Shown in pieces: positions 6,001 through 63,901 of a stretch of 64,000 nucleotides of DNA (position 1 is its first letter; the number at the start of each line of letters is the position of its first letter). A program made the translations under genes and the position numbers. Location: the sequence record OR670491.1; one strand, written 5' to 3'. The notes below the pieces were generated by a model. It ran no database searches. It was given only the letters and a program-made list of their open reading frames with translations, and was not told where the DNA came from.

Positions 6001-8998
6001 ATAGGATTGTACCAGTACTGCTATCACCAATGGTTCCGTCAACTGACCATAGGCCACTTGGAACATAATCACCATTTTCGTTTAGTACTAGAGCTTCATA
6101 TACAGCAACTGTATCACTTTCACGTTCACCAACCTGTACATATGTTGGTTCATACTCTTGGTTCCACCATGATGGACGTTGAGAGAATCCTAGCATTTCC
6201 CACGGATGGGTTGCTGGACGATATGTACCGTACTGATCAGTGTAAATTGCACGCCATGAACCACGAGCAGGAATATCAGATACATGACCATCAACTACAT
6301 AATTGGTTCCAGTATAGTTCCATGTTTTCCAGTTACTTTGGACATATGCATTAGTACTGTTACTAATACCGTTGGTAGCAGTAAAGTTAATGTATCCACG
6401 CAATAGTAGAGTTTGTTTCTCTGCCATCGTATAATCAGTTGTCTGGAAATACGGGGTTGGGAATAAATCTTCACTACTTAGTACTGGTTGATAATCTACA
6501 TCTTTGAATACGTTATCAATACTATCAAAAATACGAGATTCCAATTCAAACACAACATCATCCATTTTATCAACACCGTTAATTGCACGATATGATTTGG
6601 AAATAATACCAGTGTGGCTGATATTATAGAAGCTTGATTTGCTACCTGGATTTAGGTATGTAGCTTTTTGTGGTGCATAAGCTTGTAGAATACCTAAGAA
6701 TTGTGGTGTTGGTGGAACAAATGTACGAATAAAACCAGAAGTGCTTGCTACGTTGTCATAATAGAATGGGAATGAACTATCACGTCCCATGTTAATAGCA
6801 CTAAAAATTGCATCTACAATATTAGAAGCACTATTAGCAACAAAGCCACTTGGATCTTCGTCATACATACGAATCATTTGTGTATTGAATTTGTTAATGA
6901 AGCGGAAGTATTCTGCTTGCATAAACATGATAGCTTCAAACAAATCGATATCTTCGTTTGCAGTGTGAGCCATCAATGGAAGCATTGAAGCTTCGTTTTG
7001 AATAATGTGAGTACCGACACCATTATCAACCAACCCAGCAGCTAGACGTTCTTCGTAATCGTTGAAGTCATCAGATGAACCACTTGTAATATTCTTTTGA
7101 ATAATATCCTTGAAATGTAGGGTGTACATTCCTTGGTTGATATAAATGATATTACCGTTGTATGGGTTATTTTGTAAGTTGATTGGAATTTCATATGCAC
7201 CAAGATTCTTATCAGGAGTAATAGTACTGCTATAAGTTCTGATTTGAATAACTGAATCTTCATCTAGTGCAACAGTACTATCGATTGTAATACTTTGAAC
7301 TTGATTTTTGGACACGGTTTTGCTGAAGCTGTTGGTAACTACACCATCAACTGTTAGCTCAATAATGTCATCAGAATTATCAAGTACTTTCTGTGCCAAT
7401 TCAAATGTATGATTGTATTTTACACTTTGAACACCGTCGCCAGTGATAACGTGCCAATCAAGATATGTTTCTTTTTCTGCTTTGTAATATTGGTAAGTGC
7501 GATCCACTTCGATTACATAAGCATACATTCCATCAACTGGTGAACGGAAACTTTCTAGATCGTAAACAGTACTGAATACACGATACATGTCAGTACGGGT
7601 AACTTCTAGAGTTTGTTTAACGAACTGTTTGGAATATTCAGCAGAACGAACCCAGTCAGTTTTTAGGTGCATAGAATTGTCTTCACCGATGACGTTAAAA
7701 TAATACAAACCGTCAATCTCAACTTCTTCACCTAAATGATCATATGTATAACGTTCGGACTGTAGAAAGTTCTCATATGTATAATAGTTGTAATCACCTA
7801 ATTCGATGTTATAACCATATACACCATCAGTTGGATAGTTGTAGTTGATTTTAAATCCAAATAGAGAAGAACCTTTGAAAGTACTGGATGGATAAACGGC
7901 ACTATCGTTTAGTTTATTACCATTGCGATCATATAATTGGAATTGTGGGAAAAAGTTAACTGTAGGTTTGGCTTGTGCTTGAACCCAATGTGCACCATCC
8001 CAATACATTGAACTATTACCATAGGTATTACCTTTAGTAATTAGAACCACGTCACCTTTAATTGGTTCACCACTTGGACGGTCTTCAGTTTCTTCTTCAG
8101 GATCTAATGCTAGACCATATACGCGTGTACCATCTTGTAATTTTTTAATGTATACTTTATAAATTCGGTTATTCTCACCACTGTTACCAATACTGGTGAA
8201 GAGAATGCGTTGACCATCTTGTGGGATAATCCCGTCAATACGAATACCGGAGTTCACATCTTTTTGAACCATATCTTCTGGTTTGATGGTATCAGAGTAC
8301 AAATCAACTGTACCACGGAATTTAGTACCGTAGTTTAGAAGTTCGATATCTTTATTGAACTCGATAATAGGTGCTTTAGCACGAACGAAACGCTCATCCT
8401 GCATTAGATCTTGGGTTAGTACTGTACCATCCCCTAATGTTTCACCTAGAGTGTACCAGAAGTTTTGTAGGGACCATGTGTTGCCGTTAGTAGCATTACG
8501 TTCCATTACAACATAGTCTGGAGTTTGAATATTGTATTCGTTTTGTGTATCCCAAAGATATGAACTGTAGTTGTTCATTTTGTTTGGGTTAATAGCAGGT
8601 GTCCATGCGTAAAACTTACCAGCAAATAGGCGACTTTCATTATCAGTTAGTGCACCGTAATGATTCATGTAGCCAACGAGGTCATCATAAAATTGAATTG
8701 AACGAATACTGCGGTCATCATTTCTTGAGACGTAAGCAGTGGATAACTGATACAGTTGACGTGCAACTGTTGATTCAGCTAGGAAGATGTTACCTTCAGC
8801 GGCGGGAGAACCCATATCACCAATATAGCCGTCAACCAATTCGTTTTCAGCCGGATTAAACCATTGTTGAATGACATCATCACTTACCTTCTGAATGTCT
8901 TCTAGACCTTGCATCCATTCAGGTAATCTTTTGATGAAAAGTTTTTTCTGTACTGCTTCAGCCGTTTGTGTAGGTTGAAACTTAAAATTATTAGTCAT
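2..8998 (-). CDS. Giant virion structural protein (>2999 aa, probable baseplate wedge/tail component); 3' end lies beyond the left edge
   Basis: ATG at 8998 (MTNNFKFQPTQ...) with GGAG RBS and an ATAAATA late promoter at 9035-9041. The frame was spot-checked open at about 4320 (LQEWAFKIG) and at positions 2-31. It is absent from the ORF track, probably because no stop codon falls in the window. Directly downstream of the gp6-like gene. Confidence 0.75.
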   Translation of the reverse strand, partial: MTNNFKFQPTQTAEAVQKKLFIKRLPEWMQGLEDIQKVSDDVIQQWFNPAENELVDGYIGDMGSPAAEGNIFLAESTVARQLYQLSTAYVSRNDDRSIRSIQFYDDLVGYMNHYGALTDNESRLFAGKFYAWTPAINPNKMNNYSSYLWDTQNEYNIQTPDYVVMERNATNGNTWSLQNFWYTLGETLGDGTVLTQDLMQDERFVRAKAPIIEFNKDIELLNYGTKFRGTVDLYSDTIKPEDMVQKDVNSGIRIDGIIPQDGQRILFTSIGNSGENNRIYKVYIKKLQDGTRVYGLALDPEEETEDRPSGEPIKGDVVLITKGNTYGNSSMYWDGAHWVQAQAKPTVNFFPQFQLYDRNGNKLNDSAVYPSSTFKGSSLFGFKINYNYPTDGVYGYNIELGDYNYYTYENFLQSERYTYDHLGEEVEIDGLYYFNVIGEDNSMHLKTDWVRSAEYSKQFVKQTLEVTRTDMYRVFSTVYDLESFRSPVDGMYAYVIEVDRTYQYYKAEKETYLDWHVITGDGVQSVKYNHTFELAQKVLDNSDDIIELTVDGVVTNSFSKTVSKNQVQSITIDSTVALDEDSVIQIRTYSSTITPDKNLGAYEIPINLQNNPYNGNIIYINQGMYTLHFKDIIQKNITSGSSDDFNDYEERLAAGLVDNGVGTHIIQNEASMLPLMAHTANEDIDLFEAIMFMQAEYFRFINKFNTQMIRMYDEDPSGFVANSASNIVDAIFSAINMGRDSSFPFYYDNVASTSGFIRTFVPPTPQFLGILQAYAPQKATYLNPGSKSSFYNISHTGIISKSYRAINGVDKMDDVVFELESRIFDSIDNVFKDVDYQPVLSSEDLFPTPYFQTTDYTMAEKQTLLLRGYINFTATNGISNSTNAYVQSNWKTWNYTGTNYVVDGHVSDIPARGSWRAIYTDQYGTYRPATHPWEMLGFSQRPSWWNQEYEPTYVQVGERESDTVAVYEALVLNENGDYVPSGLWSVDGTIGDSSTGTILYGARKGQYDKYKRFGVQPFKITKTGSKTSTGIDICEIEYIAPEVLGLVSGSLNHRAEPWSYGDMGDMEFTYMNTAMFAYDQMLLLYKAKPAQFANYYWDTRNNSLNSVYTGQPQFLYGETRKRINFDSATVVHGENNTRTVGYQMFVSDYLAYQNKNITTKYGDVVRSSYVNVGHKIGGFTKADQLTFTAKSFGLISQENQTIGLVRSSNIRDEVISAVKITWTGSAYQIDGYDLVGAKFKYKLPVKNGKKVSLKIGTRNVAHYNEWKNESEIEYGKVFNTYQEVYTFICGYGEYLKEHGWIFEDVNDSGAQQDWNTIAKDFVTWSQSTLVSGEYISCTPSSANAKFGADFGSVQSIAQNSGGVWSLLDDQNQGIRQYEIETSRIGNVFTVRTTDDSDKRMALIRLSLCSYEHAVIFDDQTIFGDYIYQPTFGSVQELIKMYGYITGSWTGRLQAPGFIILEAGTLPSFEKLVTDFELYYNSETPVSDIQLQELSNHLIGYQTRDYLQRMIGSDANRVDFYKGFIHDKGSNQVLEKVLRVSKSYDTEEYKALQEWAFKIGTYGNVDGKKNLQFKLINDQFKQQPQLVSFDIHATSNGNGNNIVYFGEQGADPRWVTRPNGKFSFPMRSGRSENIQLPDIGPVSLDEISYITKEFSTAYDDRIQYMNKTGEIPESVWMYKDVDGLWDIFDLVDTEVKMLSITPIENNDPYAEQFCKVTLSDNIPLVDGEYYYFVDETNFMPDSLTVESQYYTAGTDPKVMVVPFDTSIDITFTDVDTQPKLYRYKSRFSTDADRQAYMDKKYSYKAPESTLFDRPTTYDDRTNVTALYLNVFDPINGVIPGVAMQNVNYTTPVDPAQYNSNGELLQAWGADKVGQVWWNTSTAYYLDYTRPIFDADGVVDVEATNEYKRYNWGKLLPHSKIDVLEWVCSPVEPYNWETYCKDMAKKNKNNTMYLPSGTALEDNYSAFLEYDSATDSYVTKYYFWVRDTIYVPPLHTRTKSCTDIARIIEEPAQLNIPWFAPINESSFILSNMQFEVNDDTSVLTISYYMDNTEVVKHDQYQLCKEGDSYNFNSAIWDSMWNSLRGQETTESGSVIDLLYPAVDNGLGSNKTWFQDVIEARRTFVDSANDFYRSQNMTTNTVVMAEVFNVKTTEVNPNEVAFRVLSYNSELVIAPESDKFKENDAVLVSTSGSLPTPLTTSSVYFVHIDANGYIHLMNSPSSAGSIVTITLENRGEGQHKMIKHADFEESLGTSLDMTQYWNLADWYDEGYSSTTSYTQEDSLDDANAKNYQIGDVIRVTDSDGIWTLYIKAESRESIYWKAIGRENSTIELNDMLYADYTVRTESGSLSNREINVRKALALLKNSFDLHQSTIVFDMVKYVHVEQGVVDWVFKTSYIYIIGLEQSLVQNYSNDNLINQIVEYFEEVKPYRTKIRSQIEQKTSDDDVIKGLCNDLDPNGYILVDGSWVKTEKDIWDYEYAQFSDVTQRWEQIGSLPSDFVTPNRRFQEIDVIMHYDNIQCKPNEDLASLDVLNAVNNKYQSNEKDVVSDFELQRFIYTFPENNSETLDLQVAYQMQILYPSMNITMGAAKAINDWYKENSDNLALTEEFTQNLHRIYAEATNNEVFDDVKHYVQYNTLSNRLKLYTGASNEVIHDEVGCGFSGVTFTDNPSTRLPFGFASSTDYNLGYYEVSSELYKKYVDLIKTANPAFSDEEVRIELEVEYGVYMYKFMEEQTIQDEDGEEVVIEVRRYYTDAVHVLTGMRNLFNKDASNNYEIAEEVLSNNSVQNYAFTMIPRKYVYAKVNDTFVSIPRNQSIDDFIEDIYITTGQAVSLAEINLDDLPQDVNNPMYSDYKQILDGIEGAKYYNDMNSFDNLALESQTATMKWSVQDDEVDPYIIDIRDVNPAERDIGQIRVTIDGYGFDTAAQVQLRDNSRLHVEGMVLINPYNYGQAIISIPSYAKVSNDISATTDKYDEKYFYQVKSVQTQSQMKLVDNSLANGDK

Positions 8999-40318: not shown

Positions 40319-43300
40319 ATGTATATCGATGCTTATATGGAACGTAAACGTACTGGTGATATCTTACACGTAGCAGAGCGTAAGAAAGGCAAACGCATTC
40401 TGCGTGAGGTTGACCCAGTATATGAGTATTTTGTAGAGTCGCCACTAGGTACTCATAAAACCGTCTATGGTACAATGGCACAACAACTTGAGTTCAGTTC
40501 TCAATCGCAGATGAACAAGAGTGTTGAGCAGCATAAACTTGAAGGTCTACGTATCTTTGAGAGTGATTGTAACATTACGTTTAAAACCTTGGCTAAAGAG
40601 TACATGGGTAAAGAATCGCCAGAACTTAATATTATGTTCTTCGATATCGAGACGGATTTTCATAAGAAGTTTGGTTATGCACCTCCGTCTGACCCATTCA
40701 ACCGTGTAACTGCTATTTCTTTGTATCAATCATGGACTGGTAAGGATTATGTACTGACTCTACCACCTGCTGATATGGAATTAGTTGAAGCACAAGATAT
40801 TGTAACTCGTTTGAACCAAGAAACTGATGATCCAAACAGCATTGTAATTCTCTATACTGACGAGAAAGAAATGTTCATGGAATTCTTCAGTCTAATGGAT
40901 GATGCCGATGTAATCTCTGGCTGGAACAGTGAGTTCTTTGATATTCCATACATGATTAACCGTACTCGTAAAATCTTCAATGAAGCGATGACGGCTCGTT
41001 GGTGCTTGTGGAATAAGAAACCATCCCAGCGTGAAGCAGATAACTTTGGTAAAACTGTAATCACATATGATTTGGTTGGTCGTGTTCACCTTGACTATCT
41101 CGCACTGTACAAGAAACACGCAGGACAAGTTGAGCAATCTTACAAGCTAGATGATATTGCTGAAAAAGTAACTAAAGAGAAGAAAGTAGCATATGAAGGT
41201 TCATTGGATAAATTATATCGTGAAGACTACATTACTTTCTTACGTTATTCTAAACAGGATAGTATCTTACTTAAAAAGATTGATGCTAAACAGGACTATA
41301 TCAACCTTCATAACCGACTGGCCCACAAAGAGTGTGTACTGATTAGTACTACAATGGGTTCTGTAGCACTGATTGATACTGCTATTATCAACCTAGCACA
41401 CAGTCGTGGTGAAGTAGTTTTCAACAAAGCACCTAAAGAAGACTTTGAAGTAGATCCAGAAATGGAGTACTATGAAGATGAAGAAGACGAAGAAGGTGAT
41501 GAAAAGATTAGTGCAAAAGCTGCTGGTGCATGGGTACAAGATCCAGTACTGGGTATTGTGGATTGGTTAGGATGTACTGACTTTAACTCCCTATATCCAA
41601 CCGTATTGCGTACACTCGGCATGAGTACTGAATGTATTATCGGTCAGTTGCGTCAGGATTATACTGAAGCGTATTTGGCTGCTAAGGTACAAGAGCAGAA
41701 AGCAAAATCTAAATCTAAATCTTTTGAACCTGACTGGACGGCAGCATGGCATGGTCTATTTGCAGCAGTTGAGTTTACAATGGTGCATGAAAAATCCGAA
41801 GAAAACATTATTGTTGATTTGGAAGATGGTAGTTCGTTCAATGCTACTGGTAAAGAACTATATGACATTATCTTTGCAGAAGACAGTACTATTGTACTAA
41901 GTGCAAACGGAACACTATTTGATAAGACAAAGTATGGTGTAATTCCAGAAATTCTAACTCAATGGTATTCTGAACGTAAAGCACAGCAGAAAATGGTAAT
42001 CGATTATAAGCATATGTATACTGATGGTTGGGAACTTCCACAACCAGCGACAGTTGAAGAACTTCTAAAGAACTTCACTCCTGGAACTATGCATCGTACT
42101 AACCTACATGAAGATGATCCAATTTACCTATTACGTCTTGCAATTGTTGCGGAAGAATGGGATAATGTTGCGAAGCTTATTGTAGAGAATGGAATTGAAT
42201 TGAAAGATGGTCGTATCTTCTGTTCTAAAGGGGATAAATCATACTTCAAACAACAAAGTGCATTCTGGAAACAGAACCAGCAGATTCGTAAGATTCTTCT
42301 AAACAGTCTGTATGGTGCACTACTGAACAAAGGCTCACGTTTCTTTGATAAGCGTTTAGGTCAGTCTGTAACATTGACTGGTCGTTCCATGACTAAACAC
42401 ATGGCAAGCCGTATCAATGAAATCACAACTGGTGTTTACAATCACCAAGGTGGTGTGGTAATATATGGTGATACTGACTCCGTATATTTCAGTGTAGCTC
42501 ATTACTTCAAAGAACAAAACATTCCATTCGACTTGACTAAAGAAGAAGTCGTTGATATGTACGTTAAAATTGGTGATGAAGTTGGTGAATCATTCCCTGA
42601 GTTCATGGACGAGAAATTTAACACTGGTATTGAGAAAGGACGCATTGTTGGTGCAGACCTTGAGATGGTCGGTTCCCGTGGTCTATTCTTGAAGAAAAAG
42701 CGTTATGCTATTCTTAAGTACTGGGAAGATGGTTTCCGTAAAGACATTGATGGACAGCCTGGTGAGATTAAGGCGATGGGTCTTGAAATTAAACGTTCAG
42801 ACACACCAAAATACATCCAGAACTTCCTACAGGAGACGCTAATTGCGTTGCTGGTGGGTGAGGATGAAGTCCAGCTAAAACAGCGTGTACGTGACTTTAA
42901 GAGCGTATTTAAAGACATGCCAGTACACCTTAAGGGTTCACCGAGAACCGTTAAGAACTACACTAACCTAGAAGCAGAATATGCAACTACTGGTAAGTGT
43001 AAAGTTGGACACGTACTAGCGGGTATCCAATGGAACCGTCTACGTGATGCATTCGAAGACAAGTCTGTACCGGAAGTAACTGATGGTACGAAAGTTATCG
43101 TATGTAACTTGAAAGATAACCCAATGGGTATTAAAGCAGTTGGTTATCCAATCGATTGTGCTGAGTATCTTCCAGAATGGTTCTTAGAACTACCATTCGA
43201 TGAAGAGAAAATGGAAGAAATCGTTCTAACTAAAAAGTTAGATAACATTTTTGGCATTCTTGATATGGATATTGGTATTCACGAGAAGAGTACTGCTGCA

Positions 43301-43327
43301 TTGAACAACGGATTTTTCACATGGTAA
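40319..43327 (+). CDS. gp43: Family B DNA polymerase
   Basis: Exo motifs FDIETD, GWNSEFFD, YSKQD; polymerase motifs DFNSLYP, KILLNSLYG, YGDTDS, KKRY. Confidence 0.96.
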   Translation: MYIDAYMERKRTGDILHVAERKKGKRILREVDPVYEYFVESPLGTHKTVYGTMAQQLEFSSQSQMNKSVEQHKLEGLRIFESDCNITFKTLAKEYMGKESPELNIMFFDIETDFHKKFGYAPPSDPFNRVTAISLYQSWTGKDYVLTLPPADMELVEAQDIVTRLNQETDDPNSIVILYTDEKEMFMEFFSLMDDADVISGWNSEFFDIPYMINRTRKIFNEAMTARWCLWNKKPSQREADNFGKTVITYDLVGRVHLDYLALYKKHAGQVEQSYKLDDIAEKVTKEKKVAYEGSLDKLYREDYITFLRYSKQDSILLKKIDAKQDYINLHNRLAHKECVLISTTMGSVALIDTAIINLAHSRGEVVFNKAPKEDFEVDPEMEYYEDEEDEEGDEKISAKAAGAWVQDPVLGIVDWLGCTDFNSLYPTVLRTLGMSTECIIGQLRQDYTEAYLAAKVQEQKAKSKSKSFEPDWTAAWHGLFAAVEFTMVHEKSEENIIVDLEDGSSFNATGKELYDIIFAEDSTIVLSANGTLFDKTKYGVIPEILTQWYSERKAQQKMVIDYKHMYTDGWELPQPATVEELLKNFTPGTMHRTNLHEDDPIYLLRLAIVAEEWDNVAKLIVENGIELKDGRIFCSKGDKSYFKQQSAFWKQNQQIRKILLNSLYGALLNKGSRFFDKRLGQSVTLTGRSMTKHMASRINEITTGVYNHQGGVVIYGDTDSVYFSVAHYFKEQNIPFDLTKEEVVDMYVKIGDEVGESFPEFMDEKFNTGIEKGRIVGADLEMVGSRGLFLKKKRYAILKYWEDGFRKDIDGQPGEIKAMGLEIKRSDTPKYIQNFLQETLIALLVGEDEVQLKQRVRDFKSVFKDMPVHLKGSPRTVKNYTNLEAEYATTGKCKVGHVLAGIQWNRLRDAFEDKSVPEVTDGTKVIVCNLKDNPMGIKAVGYPIDCAEYLPEWFLELPFDEEKMEEIVLTKKLDNIFGILDMDIGIHEKSTAALNNGFFTW

Positions 43328-47465: not shown

Positions 47466-53839
<6,374 letters not shown>

Positions 53840-53936: not shown

Positions 53937-55004
53937 ATGCAAACTCTAGCTGAAATTCGTGCAAAACTAAAAGCGGAACAAGAAAAAGCAGAAGCTCAAA
54001 AGAATGGTACTTTTACTGGTGAACGTAAAGCCGATTCTTTCCTAGCTTTCTGGAACGTTCCTTATAACGAACCACTAAACCTACGTTTTCTTCCAGATGC
54101 AGATGAAAGCAACCCTTTCTTCTGGCGTGAACGTGATATGATTAACCTGACTTTCCAAGGTGTAGTAGGTCTTCACACTGATAAAGTTACCGTACAAGTA
54201 CCTTGTAACGAAATGTGGGTTCCTAAATCATGTCCAGTACTGAAAGAAGTTCGTCAATGGTTCCAAAGTGCGAATGAATCTGGTGATGAAGAACTGAAAG
54301 CTATGGCTGGTCGTTACTGGAAAAAGAAAACCTATCTAATGCAATGTTTCATCGCTCCTGATAGTGTTGCAGTAAAAGATGACATGGCTCCAGAAAACCC
54401 AATTCGTCGTATTCTAGCTAACAAAGATATTTTCGATAAAGTAAAATCTATTCTACTGAATCCTGGTATCAAAGAACTACCAACTCACTACACTCATGGT
54501 CGTGACTTCGGTATTGTTAAGACTAAGAACGGCGGCGGTTACAACAGCTACGATATGTCTCAATTCTCCATGTCCGAGCGTGAACTAAACGCAGACGAAA
54601 TGGCAGCTATTGAAAAATATGGTCTATACAATCTAAATGATTTTATGCCTAAACAACCAACTCCAGAAGAACTAACAGCAATCGCTGAAATGTTCGAAGC
54701 TTCTGTAAATGGTGAAGCATATGATCCAGCACGTTGGGCTTTCGCATACCGTCCAGCAGGTGTTCAAAAACCTGTAACTGGTGGTTCTGCTCCAGCAGCA
54801 CAACCTGCTCCACAAGCTCCAGCAACACCACAACCTGCTCCACAGGCAGCGGTACAGGAATCTACTCCTGTTACTCCAACTGCTCCTGTTACCCCAGCAG
54901 CACAACCTGCTCCAACTGCTCCAGCATCAACTGGTACTGAAGCACCAAAAGAACAACTATCTGCATCTGCTCTAGTTGCTCGTTTGAAGCAACAAAGCAA
55001 GTAA
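53937..55004 (+). CDS. gp32: Single-stranded DNA-binding protein, gp32-like
   Basis: LRFLPD, FFW.ER, CPVL..VRQWF, YWKKKTY, GRDF..KT..GGYNSYD.S.F. Confidence 0.88.
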   Translation: MQTLAEIRAKLKAEQEKAEAQKNGTFTGERKADSFLAFWNVPYNEPLNLRFLPDADESNPFFWRERDMINLTFQGVVGLHTDKVTVQVPCNEMWVPKSCPVLKEVRQWFQSANESGDEELKAMAGRYWKKKTYLMQCFIAPDSVAVKDDMAPENPIRRILANKDIFDKVKSILLNPGIKELPTHYTHGRDFGIVKTKNGGGYNSYDMSQFSMSERELNADEMAAIEKYGLYNLNDFMPKQPTPEELTAIAEMFEASVNGEAYDPARWAFAYRPAGVQKPVTGGSAPAAQPAPQAPATPQPAPQAAVQESTPVTPTAPVTPAAQPAPTAPASTGTEAPKEQLSASALVARLKQQSK

Positions 55005-55079: not shown

Positions 55080-56192
55080 ATGAAAATGACAAGTGGTTTT
55101 GCAAACATTCTAAAAAATAGTACTGGCAGCGTTAAGAAAAATACTGGTGTTAGCGTAGGTTTTCATGATCCTGATACTTGGATTAGTACTGGTAACTTTG
55201 CTTTGAACTACCGTATTAGTGGTTACTTTGACCGTGGTATTCCACTTGGTAAAGTAACAATGTTTGCTGGTGAATCCGGTTCTGGTAAATCCTTTATCGT
55301 GTCTGGTAACATTGCACGTGAAGCACAACAGCAAGGAATCTTTGTTGTGATGATTGACTCCGAGAACGCATTGGATTCAGATTGGTTGCAAGCTCTAGGT
55401 GTGGATACATCTGAAGAGAAACTACTTAAAGTTAACATGGGTATGATTGGTGACGTAGCTAAATTTACTTATGAGTTCATCGAAGGTTATCGTAAAGAAT
55501 ACGAAAACACCCCGAAAGAAGAACGTCAGAAAGTACTATTCATCATCGACTCAATTGGTATGCTTAATACTGAAGTTGCTAATGACCAGATGAAAGCTGG
55601 TAACCTAAAAGGTGACATGGGTCATAAACCTAAGCAACTTAAAGCGTACATTACTAACTGTGTAAACTCCATTGGTTCTTTGAACATTGGTATGGTTTGT
55701 GTAAACCACAGTTATGAATCTCAAGACATGTTCAACCCTGATCCTAAAGTATCTGGTGGTAGCGGTCTGATTTATGCATCATCTATGGTGATTGCAATGG
55801 GTAAACTAAAACTTAAAGAAGATGAAGATGGTAATAAAACATCTGATGTAAGTGGTATCCGTTCAAAATGTAAAGTGATGAAAACTCGTTACAACAAACC
55901 ATTTGAAGATGTAGAGATTAAAATTCCTTGGGATAAAGGTATGGACCCACGCAGTGGCCTACTTGATATGTTCGAGAAATATGAACTAATCACCAAATCT
56001 GGTAACCGTCTAATGTATGTTGACATTGATACTGGTGAACAAATTCTGAAATATCGTAAAGAATGGATGCGTAATGAAGATTCTTGCTTAGACTTAGTAA
56101 TGAATCAATTCAAACGTCACCCAATGATTGAAGATGTTAAAGAAGAAGAGAAAGGTGATGAATCATTTGGTACTGACATTAGTGAGGAATAA
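55080..56192 (+). CDS. uvsX: RecA-like recombinase
   Basis: AGESGSGKS Walker A, IDSENALD, IIDSIG, VSGG.G..YASS. Confidence 0.93.
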   Translation: MKMTSGFANILKNSTGSVKKNTGVSVGFHDPDTWISTGNFALNYRISGYFDRGIPLGKVTMFAGESGSGKSFIVSGNIAREAQQQGIFVVMIDSENALDSDWLQALGVDTSEEKLLKVNMGMIGDVAKFTYEFIEGYRKEYENTPKEERQKVLFIIDSIGMLNTEVANDQMKAGNLKGDMGHKPKQLKAYITNCVNSIGSLNIGMVCVNHSYESQDMFNPDPKVSGGSGLIYASSMVIAMGKLKLKEDEDGNKTSDVSGIRSKCKVMKTRYNKPFEDVEIKIPWDKGMDPRSGLLDMFEKYELITKSGNRLMYVDIDTGEQILKYRKEWMRNEDSCLDLVMNQFKRHPMIEDVKEEEKGDESFGTDISEE

Positions 56193-56653
56193 TGAAACCT
56201 TGGCATTGGATTATCAAAGATGACAAATCTAAACTTCTTGAAATGATTGAATTTTTCGATAAAGAAATCGAAGAAGCACGTAAAGAAGTTAAAAAGATAG
56301 GTATCATTGAAAAGATTGCTCAAGAGATTCCAGGCTGGCATGAGACACGTCTTAGCCAGCTTCAAGAACTCGAAGCAGTACTTGAGATGTTAGAAATAGA
56401 AATGCGTCAGCTTCAAGGTGAGAAGTTCCAGTACTACCTAGAAGCGTACCGTCGTGCGTTATCATCGTCTGACTGTAAAAAGTATGTAGAAGGTGATAAA
56501 GAGGTATGTGAATTATATGAACTTATTAATGAAGTATCATATATTCGAAATACATTTACAAGCATTGTTAAATCCTTAGAGATGAAAGCTTTTCAGTTAA
56601 ACAATATTGTAAGACTACGTGCTGCTGGTATTGAAGATGCTCGTTTAGAATAA
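56192..56653 (+). CDS. uvsY: Recombination mediator UvsY-like
   Basis: Helical, LSSSDCKKYVEGD...LEMKAFQLNNIVRLRAAG; between uvsX and uvsW. Confidence 0.8.
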   Translation: MKPWHWIIKDDKSKLLEMIEFFDKEIEEARKEVKKIGIIEKIAQEIPGWHETRLSQLQELEAVLEMLEIEMRQLQGEKFQYYLEAYRRALSSSDCKKYVEGDKEVCELYELINEVSYIRNTFTSIVKSLEMKAFQLNNIVRLRAAGIEDARLE

Positions 56654-56700: not shown

Positions 56701-57519
56701 ATGTCAAATAAATTAGATTTCGTTAAAAAGATTTCAGTACTGGATACTGAAACCACTGGTGTTGAAAGTGATGATGATATTATTGAATTTAGTATTTCAT
56801 TTCCATGTAAAGTAACAGAAGATATTGATGGAATTGATAACTACACTTTACGTTACAAACCATTAAAAGATATTCCACCTGAAGCATCGGCAGTGCACTT
56901 TATCAGTACTGAAGATGTAGCAAACTGCCTGAACTACAGCGATGATTTGGAGAATATTGATGCTCTAATGGGTTGTCGTGATTATTTCGTTGGTCATAAT
57001 GTTCAGTTTGACCGTCGAATGATGGTAGATAACGAATATAAATATCGTAACTCTGTATCACAGTATCTATTGGATGAAGAACGTTGGATTTGTACTCTAC
57101 GTTTTGCCAAGAAGATGTTTGCAGAAGATGTTGAATTCAAGAACTTGACACTGAGTTATTTGTGGTATAAATTTGGATGTTACCGTGAAGTACATCGTCA
57201 TGTAAATGCTCACGCAGCAAAAGATGATGTATTCATGTGTTATCAAGTACTAATGAAGTTGATTGATATTGCCATTGAGCGTGGACACATTGACGAGTCC
57301 GGTGATATTGGAGCACAAATCGTAGACTTCTGTAACAAACCTATGCTTTATTCTTGTATGCCATTTGGTAAACACAAAGGTATGAAGATGAGTGAAGTAC
57401 CACTTAACTACATTGAGTGGATGATTACGAATAGTGATATTCTGGATACAAGTAATCCAAACTGTGATAAAGATTTAGTATATACATTCGAGTACGAGTA
57501 TAGTAGTCGTACTAACTAA
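56701..57519 (+). CDS. DEDDh 3'-5' exonuclease (DnaQ/ExoX-like)
   Basis: VLDTETTG, VGHNVQFD, HAAKDDV, C-terminal MPFGKHKG. Confidence 0.88.
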   Translation: MSNKLDFVKKISVLDTETTGVESDDDIIEFSISFPCKVTEDIDGIDNYTLRYKPLKDIPPEASAVHFISTEDVANCLNYSDDLENIDALMGCRDYFVGHNVQFDRRMMVDNEYKYRNSVSQYLLDEERWICTLRFAKKMFAEDVEFKNLTLSYLWYKFGCYREVHRHVNAHAAKDDVFMCYQVLMKLIDIAIERGHIDESGDIGAQIVDFCNKPMLYSCMPFGKHKGMKMSEVPLNYIEWMITNSDILDTSNPNCDKDLVYTFEYEYSSRTN

Positions 57520-57536: not shown

Positions 57537-59021
57537 ATGAAAACTTGTAAACTAACCTTACTGGACGAGGTTAACTGTAAATTTGAGGGTCTTGAACCCT
57601 CTATTCGTCAAAAGATGATTCGTGCAACTGAATATGTTTTACCATATGCAAAGTTCACACCAGCAGGTCGTATTGGTCGTTGGGATGGTAAAGTTCAGTT
57701 CATGAATCTTGGTGGCTCAACTTATTATCATATGTTGGATAAGTTGCTTCCTATTCTTGATGAAGCGAAAATTGATATTGAATTAGAAGATCACCGAGTA
57801 AATTATGGTTTCGATTTCGAACCAATTGATGAGAATATCTTTGCTGATGTAGTCTTTGGTGCAGGACACCACATGGAAGGTAAATCAATTAAACTCCGTG
57901 AGCATCAGGTAGAAGCTGTAAACGCGTGTCTGGCTAATCAACATGGTTTACTATTGGCAGCAACAGGTGCAGGTAAAACACTCATCACAGCAGCATTATC
58001 CAAGAAGGTAGAGCAGTATGGTCGCTCTGTTATCATCGTTCCTAGTACTGATTTAGTACAACAAACGTATGATGACTATGTGATGTGTGGTTTAGACACT
58101 GGTATGTTCTATGGTGCACAGAAAGACTTTGGTCATCAGCATACAATCACCACATGGCAATCCTTCAATTCTTTGTGGAAGAAAACAAAGAAAGGTGAAA
58201 TTGAACTAACTGAACAAGACGTTCATGACTTTATTGACGGTGTTGTTTGTGTTATAGTTGATGAGTGTCAAGGTGCTGGTGGTGATGCACTTGTACAAGT
58301 ACTATCTAAAGTAATGAACAACGTCCCGCTTCGTTGGGGTTTGACTGGTACTATTCCTAAAGATAAAGTGGTAGCAGCAAAGATTCGTTGTAACATTGGC
58401 GATGTGATATTCAAAATCACTGCTAAAGAATTACAAGATAAACAAATTCTAAGTACATGTAACGTGAACTGTATTAAACTTAAAAGTAATATGAAATTTG
58501 CATCATATGCTGAAGAGTTGAAGTACTTAGTTACTGACCGTGACCGAATGGCTTACATTGCGTCATTGATTGGTGCGTTGTCTGAATCGGGAAATACATT
58601 AGTACTGGTGGACCGACTGGAGGCAGGAGAACTTCTATGTGAGTATCTCGGTATTCCTAAGTCCGAATTTGTTCGTGGTGAAACTAAGAAGAAAGACCGT
58701 GAATCATCTTATGGTGAGATCCGTTGGGCTGATAACAAAATCTTGATTGCAACCTACGGTGTTGCGAGTACTGGTATCAGTATTTCACGTTTATACAATG
58801 TTGTTCTTCTTGAGCCAGGCAAAAGCTTTGTGCGTACAATTCAGTCCATTGGTCGTGGATTGCGTCGTGCCGAAGACAAAGACCACGTTGAAATCTATGA
58901 TATCAGTGGTTCAAACAAATACAGTGCAAAACACTTACGCGAGCGTATTGCATTCTATAAAGAAGCACAGTATCCACACAGTATCATTGATGTAAAAGAT
59001 TGGGAAAACACAGCGGGATAA
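57537..59021 (+). CDS. uvsW: Superfamily 2 helicase UvsW
   Basis: LREHQ, ATGAGKT, VDECQ, GLTGT, STGISI, QSIGRGLR. Confidence 0.92.
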   Translation: MKTCKLTLLDEVNCKFEGLEPSIRQKMIRATEYVLPYAKFTPAGRIGRWDGKVQFMNLGGSTYYHMLDKLLPILDEAKIDIELEDHRVNYGFDFEPIDENIFADVVFGAGHHMEGKSIKLREHQVEAVNACLANQHGLLLAATGAGKTLITAALSKKVEQYGRSVIIVPSTDLVQQTYDDYVMCGLDTGMFYGAQKDFGHQHTITTWQSFNSLWKKTKKGEIELTEQDVHDFIDGVVCVIVDECQGAGGDALVQVLSKVMNNVPLRWGLTGTIPKDKVVAAKIRCNIGDVIFKITAKELQDKQILSTCNVNCIKLKSNMKFASYAEELKYLVTDRDRMAYIASLIGALSESGNTLVLVDRLEAGELLCEYLGIPKSEFVRGETKKKDRESSYGEIRWADNKILIATYGVASTGISISRLYNVVLLEPGKSFVRTIQSIGRGLRRAEDKDHVEIYDISGSNKYSAKHLRERIAFYKEAQYPHSIIDVKDWENTAG

Positions 59022-60046: not shown

Positions 60047-60892
60047 GTGTTTGATTTCAGTAATGTTAAAAATAAATCAGTTGAAGACGAAAGTAAACCA
60101 ACACAACATTCTTTTGGTATTACTGATATTCTTCAACAGATTGACCGAGCCAACTACAACTATTACAATGAAATGACTGAGAAAGAGCGTAAAGACTTTA
60201 CGCCTTATACTGTTCTACGCTGGGTAAGTTCCTTAGATGATTCTCTACAGGTAACTTATCCAAGTTCTAAAGTGGAAAGTGTATTTGGTAAATGGAAAAA
60301 TGGTGGCAAAGAAGCACTATCTGAACTCGTTGAAGAGATGAAGAAATCTGGTATCAATGTATCATCAGTTACAAAGTACTGTCATGGTGATTACGATTGG
60401 CGTATCAAATTCGCAGTTCAAGGTCAAGGTGATGCTGCAACTCTAATCAGCAACATGACTGAATTTAACATTACTGGATCACAAATCATTTCCTTAGTGG
60501 ACAGTGATGTGGTAAAATACCAACTAATCATGCTGAATGATATGGTGAACGATGGGTTTTGGGATATGAAAGACCACCCTGAGCTTGTATACCAATTGAT
60601 GTGTTCAGTGCATGATATGCTTGGTGGTAAAGAACTACAAAGAAACTGGTTGAACTTCTCTAAAAGTTTCAAACATTCTAATAACGAATTGTTTGCTTTA
60701 CTAAAGAGTACTCAACCAGATAGCATTTCAGCACAAATGAATGAAGACGAATACAAGATTGTTCTCATGCAGTATGATAAGAAATCTTTTGAGGTATTAC
60801 TAAACAGTATGGGATACCAAGACAAAGATGCTAAATCCATGATGAAACTATTCAAAGAAGAATGTAAAAAATATGGCAAAGAAATCAAGTAG
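60047..60892 (+). CDS. Hypothetical protein, weakly resembling clamp-loader small subunit gp62
   Basis: GTG start with AGGAG RBS; KDFTPYTVLRWVSS and MLNDMVN...HPELVYQL loosely recall gp62; low certainty. Confidence 0.4.
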   Translation: MFDFSNVKNKSVEDESKPTQHSFGITDILQQIDRANYNYYNEMTEKERKDFTPYTVLRWVSSLDDSLQVTYPSSKVESVFGKWKNGGKEALSELVEEMKKSGINVSSVTKYCHGDYDWRIKFAVQGQGDAATLISNMTEFNITGSQIISLVDSDVVKYQLIMLNDMVNDGFWDMKDHPELVYQLMCSVHDMLGGKELQRNWLNFSKSFKHSNNELFALLKSTQPDSISAQMNEDEYKIVLMQYDKKSFEVLLNSMGYQDKDAKSMMKLFKEECKKYGKEIK

Positions 60893-61583
60893 TCCAGTTT
60901 TTCAATGCAAATTTTGTGATCGTGAATTCAAACGTGAAGATACCGTAAACACTCATAAATGTGTTAAGCGTGATCGTTACGACGACAGAGAGAGCCGCCC
61001 GATGAGGGAGGCTTTTCGTCTTTATATGCAATTCATGGAAATCAATAAGTTTCCTTTCAAGAAAGGAGTGGAACCTTTCATTGGTTTCATTAAGTCAAAG
61101 TACTTTAATGATTTCTATGACTTCGCAACATACTATTTAAATAATCGTGATATTTTACGTATTGATGAATTCACAGAACATTTAATGCGTACTGGTACTC
61201 CAATTACAATGTGGAGTACATACAAAGAGAAAGACAGTTGGGTACTGAGTTGTATCCGTTCAGAACTGCCAAGAGATGGTGTAGTTCGAAGCATCAACGC
61301 ATTAGTTGAGTGGGGAGAAACCGTACACAAAGAATGGAATACTTTCTTCCAGAACGTGAGTTCAGCCCGTGCAATCTCGTGGATTGAGAGTGGTAAGATC
61401 TCACCTTGGATTCTATGGTTATCTCCAAGAGAAAGTGTTAACAATTTCATGTCAAACTTCTCACATTCAGAATTAGAATATATACTTAAATACATTGACT
61501 ATAGTTACTTTGAGATTAAAACAATCAAGTACCGTAGTGATTGTGATAATATACGAGCTATGCTCAAGGAAGCAGGATTATGA
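60873..61583 (+). CDS. Hypothetical protein with N-terminal zinc finger
   Basis: FQCKFCDREFKREDTVNTHKC (C2HC-type); overlaps neighbours. Confidence 0.7.
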   Translation: MAKKSSSPVFQCKFCDREFKREDTVNTHKCVKRDRYDDRESRPMREAFRLYMQFMEINKFPFKKGVEPFIGFIKSKYFNDFYDFATYYLNNRDILRIDEFTEHLMRTGTPITMWSTYKEKDSWVLSCIRSELPRDGVVRSINALVEWGETVHKEWNTFFQNVSSARAISWIESGKISPWILWLSPRESVNNFMSNFSHSELEYILKYIDYSYFEIKTIKYRSDCDNIRAMLKEAGL

Positions 61584-61909
61584 ATAATAAAAGTATATAC
61601 AATAAAATACCTGAAGGGTATGTGCCAACCCCAAAGGTTGACAAGAGTAGAGAGATTAGTTTATTAAGGCAGGGTTCTATTACTGAGATTACACTTGATG
61701 GGTCAACCTTTCAAGTATCTGATCCAGTACGAATTGAAAAGATAATTAAACTTGTTGAAAGACACGATGAACGATTGTATAATATGAATCAGGAATTATT
61801 ACAATACAAGCGTGCTTGTGCACAGTTGGAACAGAAAGTCAACAAACTTTCCATAACTGTGAATAAATTACAGGAGCAGATTAAGAATGCAGGACTCGAC
61901 AGGTTCTAA
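61580..61909 (+). CDS. Small coiled-coil protein
   Basis: Heptad pattern in the C-terminal half; ATGA coupling. Confidence 0.65.
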   Translation: MNNKSIYNKIPEGYVPTPKVDKSREISLLRQGSITEITLDGSTFQVSDPVRIEKIIKLVERHDERLYNMNQELLQYKRACAQLEQKVNKLSITVNKLQEQIKNAGLDRF

Positions 61910-62525
61910 TCATTACAGAAAAGCAAGGACTGATATTGACATTGACTTCAAAGATAGTAAGTCAGTGATTGCAATGTTACCTTGCATTAGAAGTACTGAA
62001 AAAATTACCGAAGATGGATTGATTGCACACAATAGTGGTGTTCATTTTGATAACATCCCAGTTGACCCAATCTCCGGTCTAGCAAGCATTCAATACAAAG
62101 AAGCCGAAAGATTGGGATACCAAAAGGTTGATATCCTGTCACAATCGGCTTATATGTACGTGCGTGACAGAAAACATCTAAAGGAACTTATGAATCGTGA
62201 ACCAGATTGGAGTCACTTATTAGTACCGGAAATTGTTGACAATCTATCACAAATTAAAAAACACATAACGTTACTTAACGTTTGGAAACCGCAAACTATC
62301 GACCAACTAGCTATGTTTATCGCTATGATTCGACCGGGTAAACGCGAATGCCAAAGTATGAACACATGGTCTGAAGTTGAGGCTGTTATTTGGGATTACA
62401 GCACTATCGGTACAGATCAGAGTGGGAACAAGCTACGTTACTTCAAAAAGCCACATGCTTATGCATATAGCTTAATGATTGTCGTGCAACTTAATGCACT
62501 GGTTGAACATCTTACTTCTTCTTAA
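61887..62525 (+). CDS. Miniature DNA polymerase III alpha (DnaE)-like protein
   Basis: Ordered C-family motifs TDIDIDF, HNSGVHF, GYQKVDILS, AMIRPG, FKKPHAYAY in only 212 aa. Confidence 0.75.
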   Translation: MQDSTGSNHYRKARTDIDIDFKDSKSVIAMLPCIRSTEKITEDGLIAHNSGVHFDNIPVDPISGLASIQYKEAERLGYQKVDILSQSAYMYVRDRKHLKELMNREPDWSHLLVPEIVDNLSQIKKHITLLNVWKPQTIDQLAMFIAMIRPGKRECQSMNTWSEVEAVIWDYSTIGTDQSGNKLRYFKKPHAYAYSLMIVVQLNALVEHLTSS

Positions 62526-62865
62526 GTGCCACGTTGCGACGTTTAATACGCTTCTGTGGCAAATCACTTAAAGACACAGTTGGGCCACATACGAAATTCA
62601 CCGCTGGGGTATCGAATCTCTGTGTGTAAGGCTCAAATTTTTCCATTTCTTCTTGAAAAAATAAACATACTGGGATGTTTCTGTTGCTTTGCCACCACCA
62701 GTCATGTGCTATGCTAAGTAATTCGTCTTGCATTGGCTCATTCATATCATCAAAGGAGTAAAGAGTAGTGTACTGTTTACTTTTGATTTTGATAATACCA
62801 ATGTAAGTTTTGCCATCACACTGCACAACAGTAATGAATGGTGGAATAGTATTATATTGATTCAT
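62512..62865 (-). CDS. Conserved hypothetical protein
   Basis: Probable start MNQYNT; WWWQSNRNIPVCLF motif. Confidence 0.65.
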   Translation of the reverse strand: MNQYNTIPPFITVVQCDGKTYIGIIKIKSKQYTTLYSFDDMNEPMQDELLSIAHDWWWQSNRNIPVCLFFQEEMEKFEPYTQRFDTPAVNFVCGPTVSLSDLPQKRIKRRNVALKKK

Positions 62866-62923
62866 ATGAGTTCCATAAATATTAGTATAAATGTTATACC
62901 TATTATTTATGGAAGGAAAAATC

Positions 62924-63901
62924 ATGGCTCATCACGGTGTCTTTATGTACCCTTATAATCAGGAAGTCTCGTTGGGCAATTTTAATATGCCATATAGCAA
63001 CGAGAAGCTTACTATATATCGAGGTGCAAATAATACTTTATCTTTTACAGTACATAATGCTGATGGAAAATATACTCTTTTAAAAGATAATGAATATCTT
63101 ACTTTTATGATATTCGATGCACGTAATAATACTAAACTAATTGATATAGTACTTGAAAAAGTTAAACCAAGTTGGCTATCAGAAAGTGGTCAAGCACGTC
63201 AAACACTTGGTAATAGTAAGAAAGTTTACTATGGATGTATAGTTCCAGCAGGTGTTATCCAAGATACAAGTCCTGGTTCTAAGTATCGCTGGAGTATTAC
63301 AAAAGTTACAATGGACGGTTCTCTAATTGAACCTACGCAGTACTTGTATACGGGTCATGACTATGAAGCATGTGGTGATTTGATTATATCTGATCAAGCT
63401 GCTCCTGTATTTGTACCAAGTGTTGAAGTGTCAAGAAATAAGAATCCAGCATGGACTTCTATTATGCGTTTGTATCATGAACCGATTGCAATGGGAATGA
63501 CTGGTGAATTTGATATTCTTGCTTCTTCCCCTCTACCTGCACAGATGCAGTACGGATTGGTAGATGGTTTGAGTACTCTCGCTATGTATTTTGATAACTT
63601 CATTGGACGTATCCAATTACAAGGGTGTTTATGTAACAACGTACCTACAGATAATGAAAACTATAAATGGTTTATCATTAAATTGGATGGTAAAGATTAT
63701 ATAGAAAATGGTATTGATGCTAATGGTTTTGCTAAACCACTAGACGACATACAAGCTTTTAACTTTAAAGGTAACTATATGTGGTTGCGTTTGGTTGTAT
63801 GTATACATCCAAAGGTTGAACCTGTCCCTTATGACTATGCAGCAGTTAGAAAGATCTACGATCCTCTATTAACTGTTCCAAAAATTTTGATTCGCAGATG
63901 A
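62924..63901 (+). CDS. Probable virion structural protein
   Basis: GGAAGG RBS, ATAAATA at 62875-62881, beta-rich composition. Confidence 0.6.
   Translation: MAHHGVFMYPYNQEVSLGNFNMPYSNEKLTIYRGANNTLSFTVHNADGKYTLLKDNEYLTFMIFDARNNTKLIDIVLEKVKPSWLSESGQARQTLGNSKKVYYGCIVPAGVIQDTSPGSKYRWSITKVTMDGSLIEPTQYLYTGHDYEACGDLIISDQAAPVFVPSVEVSRNKNPAWTSIMRLYHEPIAMGMTGEFDILASSPLPAQMQYGLVDGLSTLAMYFDNFIGRIQLQGCLCNNVPTDNENYKWFIIKLDGKDYIENGIDANGFAKPLDDIQAFNFKGNYMWLRLVVCIHPKVEPVPYDYAAVRKIYDPLLTVPKILIRR

Follow-up and report, generated by a model that had tools for sequence, protein, structure and literature searches.

Group 2.2 jumbo phages have been predicted to encode a split, minimal relative of the alpha subunit of bacterial DNA polymerase III (Pol III). 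According to the sequence analysis of Iyer, Anantharaman, Krishnan, Burroughs and Aravind (2021, Viruses 13:63; PMC7824862), an N-terminal protein binds the nucleoside triphosphate and a C-terminal protein, encoded far from the first, binds Mg2+ and the DNA template; cooperation with the family B polymerase (PolB) in the synthesis of one strand or in repair was suggested. Here we describe a 212-amino-acid open reading frame (ORF) of Escherichia jumbo phage vB_EcoM_JNE01 (Asteriusvirus; OR670491.1, 355,583 bp), a Rak2/121Q-like jumbo myophage. The DNA analysed, called the window below, is a 64-kb stretch corresponding to record positions 124001-188000, and positions refer to it unless the record is named. 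We conclude that the ORF very probably codes for one of two subunits, the C-terminal one, that make up a minimal nucleotidyltransferase of the C family, similar to Pol III alpha, in Rak2-like (group 2.2) jumbo phages. Its product is referred to as the C-half, and its 172-amino-acid partner protein as the N-half.

The system is the same as the one described for group 2.2, in which a Rak2-like phage combines PolB with a two-protein minimal module: the C-terminal protein is this ORF (PHROG 11778), the partner belongs to PHROG 11127, and nothing essential is different. The genome type also fits group 2.2, with a T4-like replication apparatus of PolB, gp32, UvsX, UvsY and UvsW encoded in the window. 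The split enzyme is therefore already known as a computational prediction; in the passages found of a 2026 survey on bacterial polymerases, these phage forms are not covered. What is new here is modest, consisting of fused metagenomic forms of 336-376 amino acids, the exact break point, confident models, strong purifying selection and gene surroundings that recur in different genera for each of the two halves.

Among enzymes of solved structure, the DnaE proteins of Thermus aquaticus, E. coli and M. tuberculosis were the only credible structural matches for the C-half model, having in common with it the Pol-beta-like palm, the DxD and third aspartates, the RP(G) motif and the K-x-H...Y motif. 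DnaE is a single chain of ~1160 amino acids, whereas the split enzyme is made of two chains of 212 and 172 amino acids with ~15% identity to DnaE. It lacks the PHP, clamp-binding, HhH, OB and tau-binding parts, its thumb is reduced to a beta-hairpin, and the phage that encodes it also has PolB. PolC of Firmicutes (3f2b, 3f2c) has the same C-family palm and fingers and was matched by the model of a fused form described below (E 1.2e-4, TMq 0.53), more weakly than DnaE; unlike the split enzyme, it has an inserted DnaQ-type exonuclease as well as PHP and OB domains. Full-length phage DnaE proteins (PHROG 405; group 3.2 jumbo phages of Iyer et al.) were matched among the viral models of BFVD, and a region of their profile is common to both halves. 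These are host-like, PHP-bearing replicases, in contrast to the minimal split enzyme that accompanies PolB.

The C-half gene is a real ORF with a good ribosome-binding site, an AGGAG located within the 3' end of the upstream ORF (Table 1). Its product contains five DnaE-type motifs, DIDIDF (residues 16-21), HNSGV (48-52), GYQKVDILS (77-85), AMIRPG (146-151) and FKKPHAYAY (186-194), in the correct order, as a sequence-only reading of this DNA had stated. The gene is labelled 'hypothetical' in its own record, 'membrane protein' in the records of some relatives and 'DNA polymerase III alpha' in those of others. The protein matched PHROG 11778 'DNA polymerase' over its full length (E 2e-102) and has 371 homologues, each of about 190-220 amino acids.

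The kinship of the C-half to DnaE was supported by profile comparison. When a profile of 25 homologues was searched against PDB sequences, the seven best matches were DnaE, the top one being M. tuberculosis DnaE1 (5lew, E 0.005), and the similarity extended collinearly over four segments, which hold the DxD and K-x-D strands and the RP(G) and K-x-H...Y motifs. In the profile alignments, K80 and D82 correspond to K579 and D581 of 5lew, while D16 and D18 correspond to residues 401 and 403 of E. coli alpha, two of its three catalytic aspartates. Across 114 homologues, with members down to 26% identity, D16, D18, K80, D82 and P150 are invariant, and D20, H48, G51, P58, W108, P135, A142, A146, I148, R149, K152, K187 and H190 are conserved in at least 90%; Y194 is also among the conserved residues.

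Structural modelling gave the same picture. The AlphaFold2 model of the C-half, built on the 114 homologues, had a predicted local distance difference test score (pLDDT) of 95.6 and a predicted TM score (pTM) of 0.85, and it places the carboxylate triad D16, D18 and D82 on strands 17-21 and 80-85. The top 12 Foldseek matches in the PDB were DnaE chains from Thermus, Mycobacterium and E. coli, of which the best eight had probabilities of 0.97-1.00 (E from 3e-3, TMq 0.38-0.50), compared to 0.10 or less for the matches below the DnaE chains. The best named matches among the BFVD viral models were phage DnaE. None of the other Pol-beta-fold nucleotidyltransferases, including minimal nucleotidyltransferases, cGAS-like, CCA-adding and poly(A) enzymes, appeared among the Pfam, PDB-sequence or Foldseek matches. 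A Pfam scan detected the PHP domain (PF02811) in neither half and in none of the fused forms, whereas the DnaE fragments P0403 and P0404 do match it. Of the finger domain only a remnant is present, its RP(G) and K-x-H...Y motifs aligning with the DnaE fingers, and the C-half stops at residue 212, one helix (~20 residues) past the latter motif, where DnaE runs ~400 residues further. On the strength of these profiles and models, the C-half is a genuine, strongly conserved relative of DnaE. The proposals made from the sequence by itself, that the ORF is homologous to palm and fingers of DnaE and that the PHP and OB/HhH parts are absent, were thereby borne out, and the three aspartates picked there (D16, D18 and D82) proved invariant.

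The C-half starts ~15 residues ahead of the DxD strand. In Pol-beta-fold transferases DxD comes after a nucleotide-binding Gly-Ser element, and this element is absent from the 212-amino-acid ORF. A six-frame ORF search of the window with the N-terminal parts of the fused proteins found no N-half-like ORF, with no match better than E 0.8. By tblastn with the N-terminal 189 residues of the fused protein P0196, a place in JNE01 was identified at record positions 217647-218174, corresponding to a gene annotated as 'hypothetical protein' (Table 1) that lies 31.1 kb downstream of the C-half gene and 29.6 kb past the window end. This N-half matched PF07733 (E 9e-9; 35.8 bits, above the gathering score of 23.9; positions 16-95 of the 260-position profile), the Pol III alpha NTPase domain for which the C-half ORF gave no match. 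It also matched PHROG 11127 'DNA polymerase' (E 2.5e-82) and the DnaE of Thermus and Mycobacterium. Its GRGS motif occupies residues 139-142, with RGS invariant in all 24 of the 24 aligned sequences, and the protein ends six residues beyond an invariant Glu-Phe. Both halves match the same region of the 1190-position PHROG 405 profile. Since the partner lies outside the window, a reading limited to the window was bound to miss that the ORF encodes half an enzyme. The earlier idea of a self-contained miniature polymerase failed on this point: the Gly-Ser element is encoded in a separate protein of 172 amino acids, 31 kb away.

The two halves are linked by natural fused forms. An exhaustive HMMER search returned two longer proteins among 267 representatives, P0196 (375 amino acids, match 190-372) and P0231 (336 amino acids, match 108-281); together with P0390 and P0391, the fused forms found in metagenomes span 336-376 amino acids. 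The N-terminal parts of P0196 and P0231 carry a GRGS or RGSG motif; these two proteins match PF07733 with 59.6 and 35.4 bits, respectively, and precomputed PF07733 matches exist for P0390 and P0391. In both P0196 and P0231 the PF07733 match spans the junction, and that of P0196 (residues 97-207) reaches into the DxD strand. PHROG 11127 (residues 8-108) and PHROG 11778 (108-321) lie back to back on P0231. In alignments with the fused proteins, N-halves extend over P0196 residues 1 to ~181, and C-halves set in no more than ~10 residues further on. The fused forms were also tied to DnaE by direct comparison: phmmer linked P0196 to DnaE fragments (E 6e-6 and 8.6e-4), and hhalign of the fused and N-half profile with P0404, a bona fide bacterial DnaE fragment with PHP and PF07733, gave a probability of 95.5% (E 1.3e-8) for a match that runs through GRGS into DxD. 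With the C-half profile, the DxD stretch alone was aligned to P0404 (probability 1.8%), a result that carries no information because this fragment stops before the third Asp.

The fused model was built from an alignment with only five C-halves (A6); combined alignments with many C-halves (A3, A5 and A7) placed N-halves on the C-terminal region and were discarded. The AlphaFold2 model of P0196 had a pLDDT of 84.7; in it the junction belongs to a loop, modelled with lower confidence, that connects the Gly-Ser helices with the DxD strand. In the PDB, Foldseek returned 16 matches with E values of 1.2e-3 or better, each of them DnaE, PolC or 9qrn (titled only 'DNA polymerase'), the best at E 4e-8 (TMq 0.45-0.58) and the next match beyond them at E 4. 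Judged from the natural fused proteins and their model, the two halves are parts of one catalytic module. Because the junction falls between the Gly-Ser helices and the DxD strand, the break lies inside the core Pol-beta-like nucleotidyltransferase fold, so that neither half would be able to form the active site alone.

One of the fused genes has a distinct context. P0231 is encoded directly downstream of a 552-amino-acid PF03090 replicase/helix-turn-helix protein with a 4-nt overlap (L002:1516-4181), on a JGI metagenome contig of 7992 bp that also carries a peptidoglycan-binding (endolysin-like) gene. This arrangement suggests that the fused protein, translationally coupled to the replicase gene, may serve a small replicon.

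The two halves also occur together. The N-half was found in as many phage records as the C-half (96 each), and a fused query matched 193 places in 101 records, so two places in nearly every record. The hosts include Escherichia, Klebsiella, Salmonella, Erwinia, Yersinia, Pseudomonas, Xanthomonas, Vibrio, Agrobacterium, Sinorhizobium and others. In isolated phages the two genes are always separate, at distances of 31 kb in JNE01, ~44 kb in PA5oct, ~182 kb in Atu_ph07 and ~15 kb in Stenotrophomonas phage CM1, the closest spacing being ~4 kb on the same strand in Ralstonia phage RsoM2USA (MG752970.1 133321-138381). In Escherichia phage CMSTMSU (MH494197.1, ~229549-229962), the N-half query matched two places with only 81% coverage, compared to one full-length place in other Asteriusviruses; the N-half gene of CMSTMSU may be interrupted or mis-assembled.

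The genes around both halves were then compared across phages. In JNE01 the C-half gene closes a replication and recombination block that runs from PolB to UvsW and on through five small genes (Table 1). The complete PolB that the sequence-only reading had placed alongside is indeed present and is presumed to be the main replicase.

Table 1. Features of the split enzyme and its surroundings in phage vB_EcoM_JNE01 (window positions, except where the record is named).
Feature	Position	Strand	Basis or remark
C-half gene (C-terminal half of split minimal Pol III alpha-like enzyme, with predicted metal-binding and finger parts)	61887..62525	+	ATG start, 212 amino acids, stop included
AGGAG, Shine-Dalgarno-like	61872..61876	+	10 nt before C-half ATG; read from sequence
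N-half gene, WOL22858.1 'hypothetical protein', 172 amino acids	OR670491.1 217635-218153		tblastn with P0196 N-terminal part
C2H2 zinc-finger protein, 236 amino acids, PHROG 11058	60873..61583	+	PHROG; weak zf-C2H2 match
Coiled-coil ORF, 109 amino acids, PHROG 14909 'virion structural protein'	61580..61909	+	directly upstream; 23-nt overlap with C-half start
Convergent small ORF, PHROG 11637, basic C-terminal tail	62512..62925	-	14-nt overlap of its 3' end with C-half gene
Family B DNA polymerase, 1002 amino acids, exonuclease and polymerase domains	40319..43327	+	PF03104 E 1.7e-22, PF00136 E 1.3e-21
RNase H/FEN-type 5'-3' exonuclease	47475-48485		
gp32-like single-stranded DNA-binding protein	53937-55004	+	Pfam, PHROGs
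UvsX/RecA	55080-56192	+	Pfam, PHROGs
UvsY	56192-56653	+	Pfam, PHROGs
DEDDh RNase T-type (epsilon-like) exonuclease	56701-57519	+	Pfam; PHROG 192 'DNA polymerase exonuclease subunit'
UvsW-type helicase	57537-59021	+	Pfam, PHROGs

The order of genes at the C-half locus is retained in distant phages. Pseudomonas phage PAC2 (PA5oct-like) has UvsY, UvsW, several small genes, the C2H2 zinc-finger gene, the C-half gene and the convergent ORF, with a primase and a primase/helicase further beyond. In Agrobacterium phage Atu_ph07, the zinc-finger gene lies two genes upstream of the C-half gene, the convergent ORF follows and a primase/helicase lies further downstream; the genes upstream are annotated 'hypothetical'. 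The zinc-finger homologues beside the C-half matched with E 2e-31 in PAC2 and E 1e-22 in Atu_ph07, and the convergent ORFs at the same position with E 9e-23 and E 2e-22. The 3'-3' overlap between the C-half gene and the convergent ORF is 14-17 nt in Escherichia, Pseudomonas and Agrobacterium phages. Because homologues and the PHROG profile of the convergent ORF begin at its residue 21, its annotated start is probably too early and the true start is probably the ATG at 62865. From the gene order, the zinc-finger protein is a possible accessory factor or partner of the C-half. The sequence-only reading had suggested the upstream proteins and the DEDDh exonuclease as partners; of these, gene order favours the zinc-finger protein alone.

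The N-half gene likewise has a recurrent setting: in JNE01, Pseudomonas phage Paride and Atu_ph07, the gene for the clamp-loader large subunit follows two or three genes downstream of it, and a GroES/gp31-like gene separates the two. In JNE01 the GroES/gp31-like and clamp-loader stretch corresponds to L003:4915-5241 and 5597-6550 (OR670491.1 218561-220196), and in Atu_ph07 the GroES/gp31-like gene is annotated 'head morphogenesis'. The neighbourhoods of both halves are circumstantial evidence that would fit a role in DNA synthesis. The placement of the N-half gene by the clamp loader and of the C-half gene by UvsW and primase/helicase hints at a possible division of labour with the family B enzyme.

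Further segments were matched in two other genes of the window. In the C-terminal part of the DEDDh exonuclease, a short stretch (residues 218-242) matched PF12843 (QSregVF_b). The terminase large subunit (886 amino acids, 49670-52330, + strand) has Terminase_6N at residues 430-566 and a LAGLIDADG/Hom_end homing-endonuclease segment at approximately residues 280-366, which looks like an intein-type insertion into this packaging ATPase.

We propose the following arrangement for the two-subunit enzyme. The C-half would supply the beta-sheet that holds the carboxylate triad for two metals, in which D16 and D18 share a strand and D82 lies on a neighbouring one, together with the helical remnant of the DnaE fingers (R149-P150-x-K152 and K187-x-x-H190...Y194). 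The N-half would supply helices and the GRGS loop, which in DnaE bind the triphosphate of the incoming nucleotide, and the break would fall in the loop that leads from the Gly-Ser helix to the DxD strand. The halves would associate non-covalently into a heterodimer of 384 residues, and the complex may be an auxiliary polymerase that makes DNA on a primer-template while the family B enzyme serves as replicase. Low processivity would be expected because the thumb, clamp-binding, OB and PHP parts are missing, and possible roles include recombination-dependent replication, gap filling and repair.

Several observations weigh against this reading. First, no biochemical, structural or expression study of the split enzyme was found in the literature searched, and the main text of the PA5oct multi-omics paper makes no gene-level statement on the halves. 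Second, the clamp-binding region, HhH/OB and PHP are absent and the thumb is no more than a beta-hairpin; because these parts are missing, templated and processive synthesis is not assured. Third, the distance between the halves ranges from ~4 kb to ~220 kb among phages, and co-regulation is for that reason not obvious. Lastly, the single C-half sequence matched nothing in Pfam, where no threshold was reached, or among PDB sequences, so that its kinship to DnaE is visible only by profiles and structure; the Pol III finger domain PF17657 gave weak matches in 14 of 25 family members, with a best E of 0.0078. We hold only as a tentative idea, more doubtful than probable, that the 44-kDa two-chain enzyme is a working template-directed polymerase, which would be the smallest known in the C family and would divide the work at the fork, or in recombination-dependent replication, with the polymerase of family B.

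The strongest alternative is that the halves form a two-subunit nucleotidyltransferase that is not a templated polymerase, acting instead in end addition to DNA or RNA, in making primers, or in producing a nucleotide signal or counter-defence. The extreme reduction of the protein, with neither clamp-binding nor OB/HhH parts and an end ~20 residues after K-x-H...Y, would agree with such an activity, as would the presence of a full PolB replicase and the lack of an activity study in the literature searched. However, the retained finger motifs are specifically common to C-family polymerases, and Foldseek returned C-family polymerases only, with no other Pol-beta-fold transferase. Both genes also lie among replication genes, the C-half gene near UvsW and primase/helicase and the N-half gene near the clamp loader, and one fused homologue overlaps the upstream PF03090 replicase gene. 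We regard this alternative as unlikely.

Considerably less likely still is that the 212-amino-acid protein is a self-sufficient miniature nucleotidyltransferase, working alone or with its immediate neighbours, which is what the sequence-only reading had suggested. The carboxylate triad and finger motifs are invariant, the C-half model is compact and confident, and the flanking zinc-finger and convergent genes are conserved, all as expected of such a protein. Yet it begins ~15 residues before DxD without the Gly-Ser element, and that element resides in a separate protein present in an equal number of records (96 each; 193 places in 101 records for the fused query), while the window holds no N-half-like ORF; the fused forms, moreover, show the two as one module. 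What stands from that reading is the kinship to DnaE, the conserved aspartates and the view that the gene is no pseudogene, and what falls is the stand-alone polymerase.

A catalytically dead remnant of a captured dnaE with a structural or regulatory role, or a pseudogene fragment, appears highly improbable. The protein is about a fifth of the length of DnaE, and the label 'hypothetical' given to it by its own record, like the 'membrane protein' of some relatives' records, would suit such an origin. Compared with phage 121Q, however, the C-half shows 79.7% DNA identity and 88.2% protein identity, with a nonsynonymous rate (dN) of 0.076 and a synonymous rate (dS) of ~2.25, and the resulting dN/dS of 0.034 demonstrates strong purifying selection. 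None of the triad residues varies among the 114 sequences, some of them only 26% identical, relatives keep the same gene, of ~190-216 amino acids, at the same place, and no full-length dnaE was found at this locus in relatives, all of which upholds the earlier view that the gene is not decaying.

Cyanobacteria have split dnaE genes whose products are joined by trans-splicing, and the window's terminase gene has an intein-type LAGLIDADG insertion, but joining of the halves after translation by a split intein was rejected as having practically no chance, since N-halves stop at about P0196 residue 181, C-halves start within ~10 residues, the alignment to the fused forms leaves no space for intein halves, and neither half has a Pfam intein match. 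With no room for split-intein halves, association of the two subunits would have to be non-covalent.

The two-subunit reading bears first on annotation: we suggest that the C-half be labelled 'Pol III alpha-like polymerase, C-terminal (metal-binding) subunit', and not as a stand-alone polymerase, a hypothetical protein or a membrane protein. If the halves do come together as an active polymerase, the pair would set the minimal catalytic core for the family of bacterial replicative polymerases, and the phage would be running family B and family C polymerases side by side. If the enzyme is template-directed, it would support the published idea of a likeness to the ancestral Pol III core.

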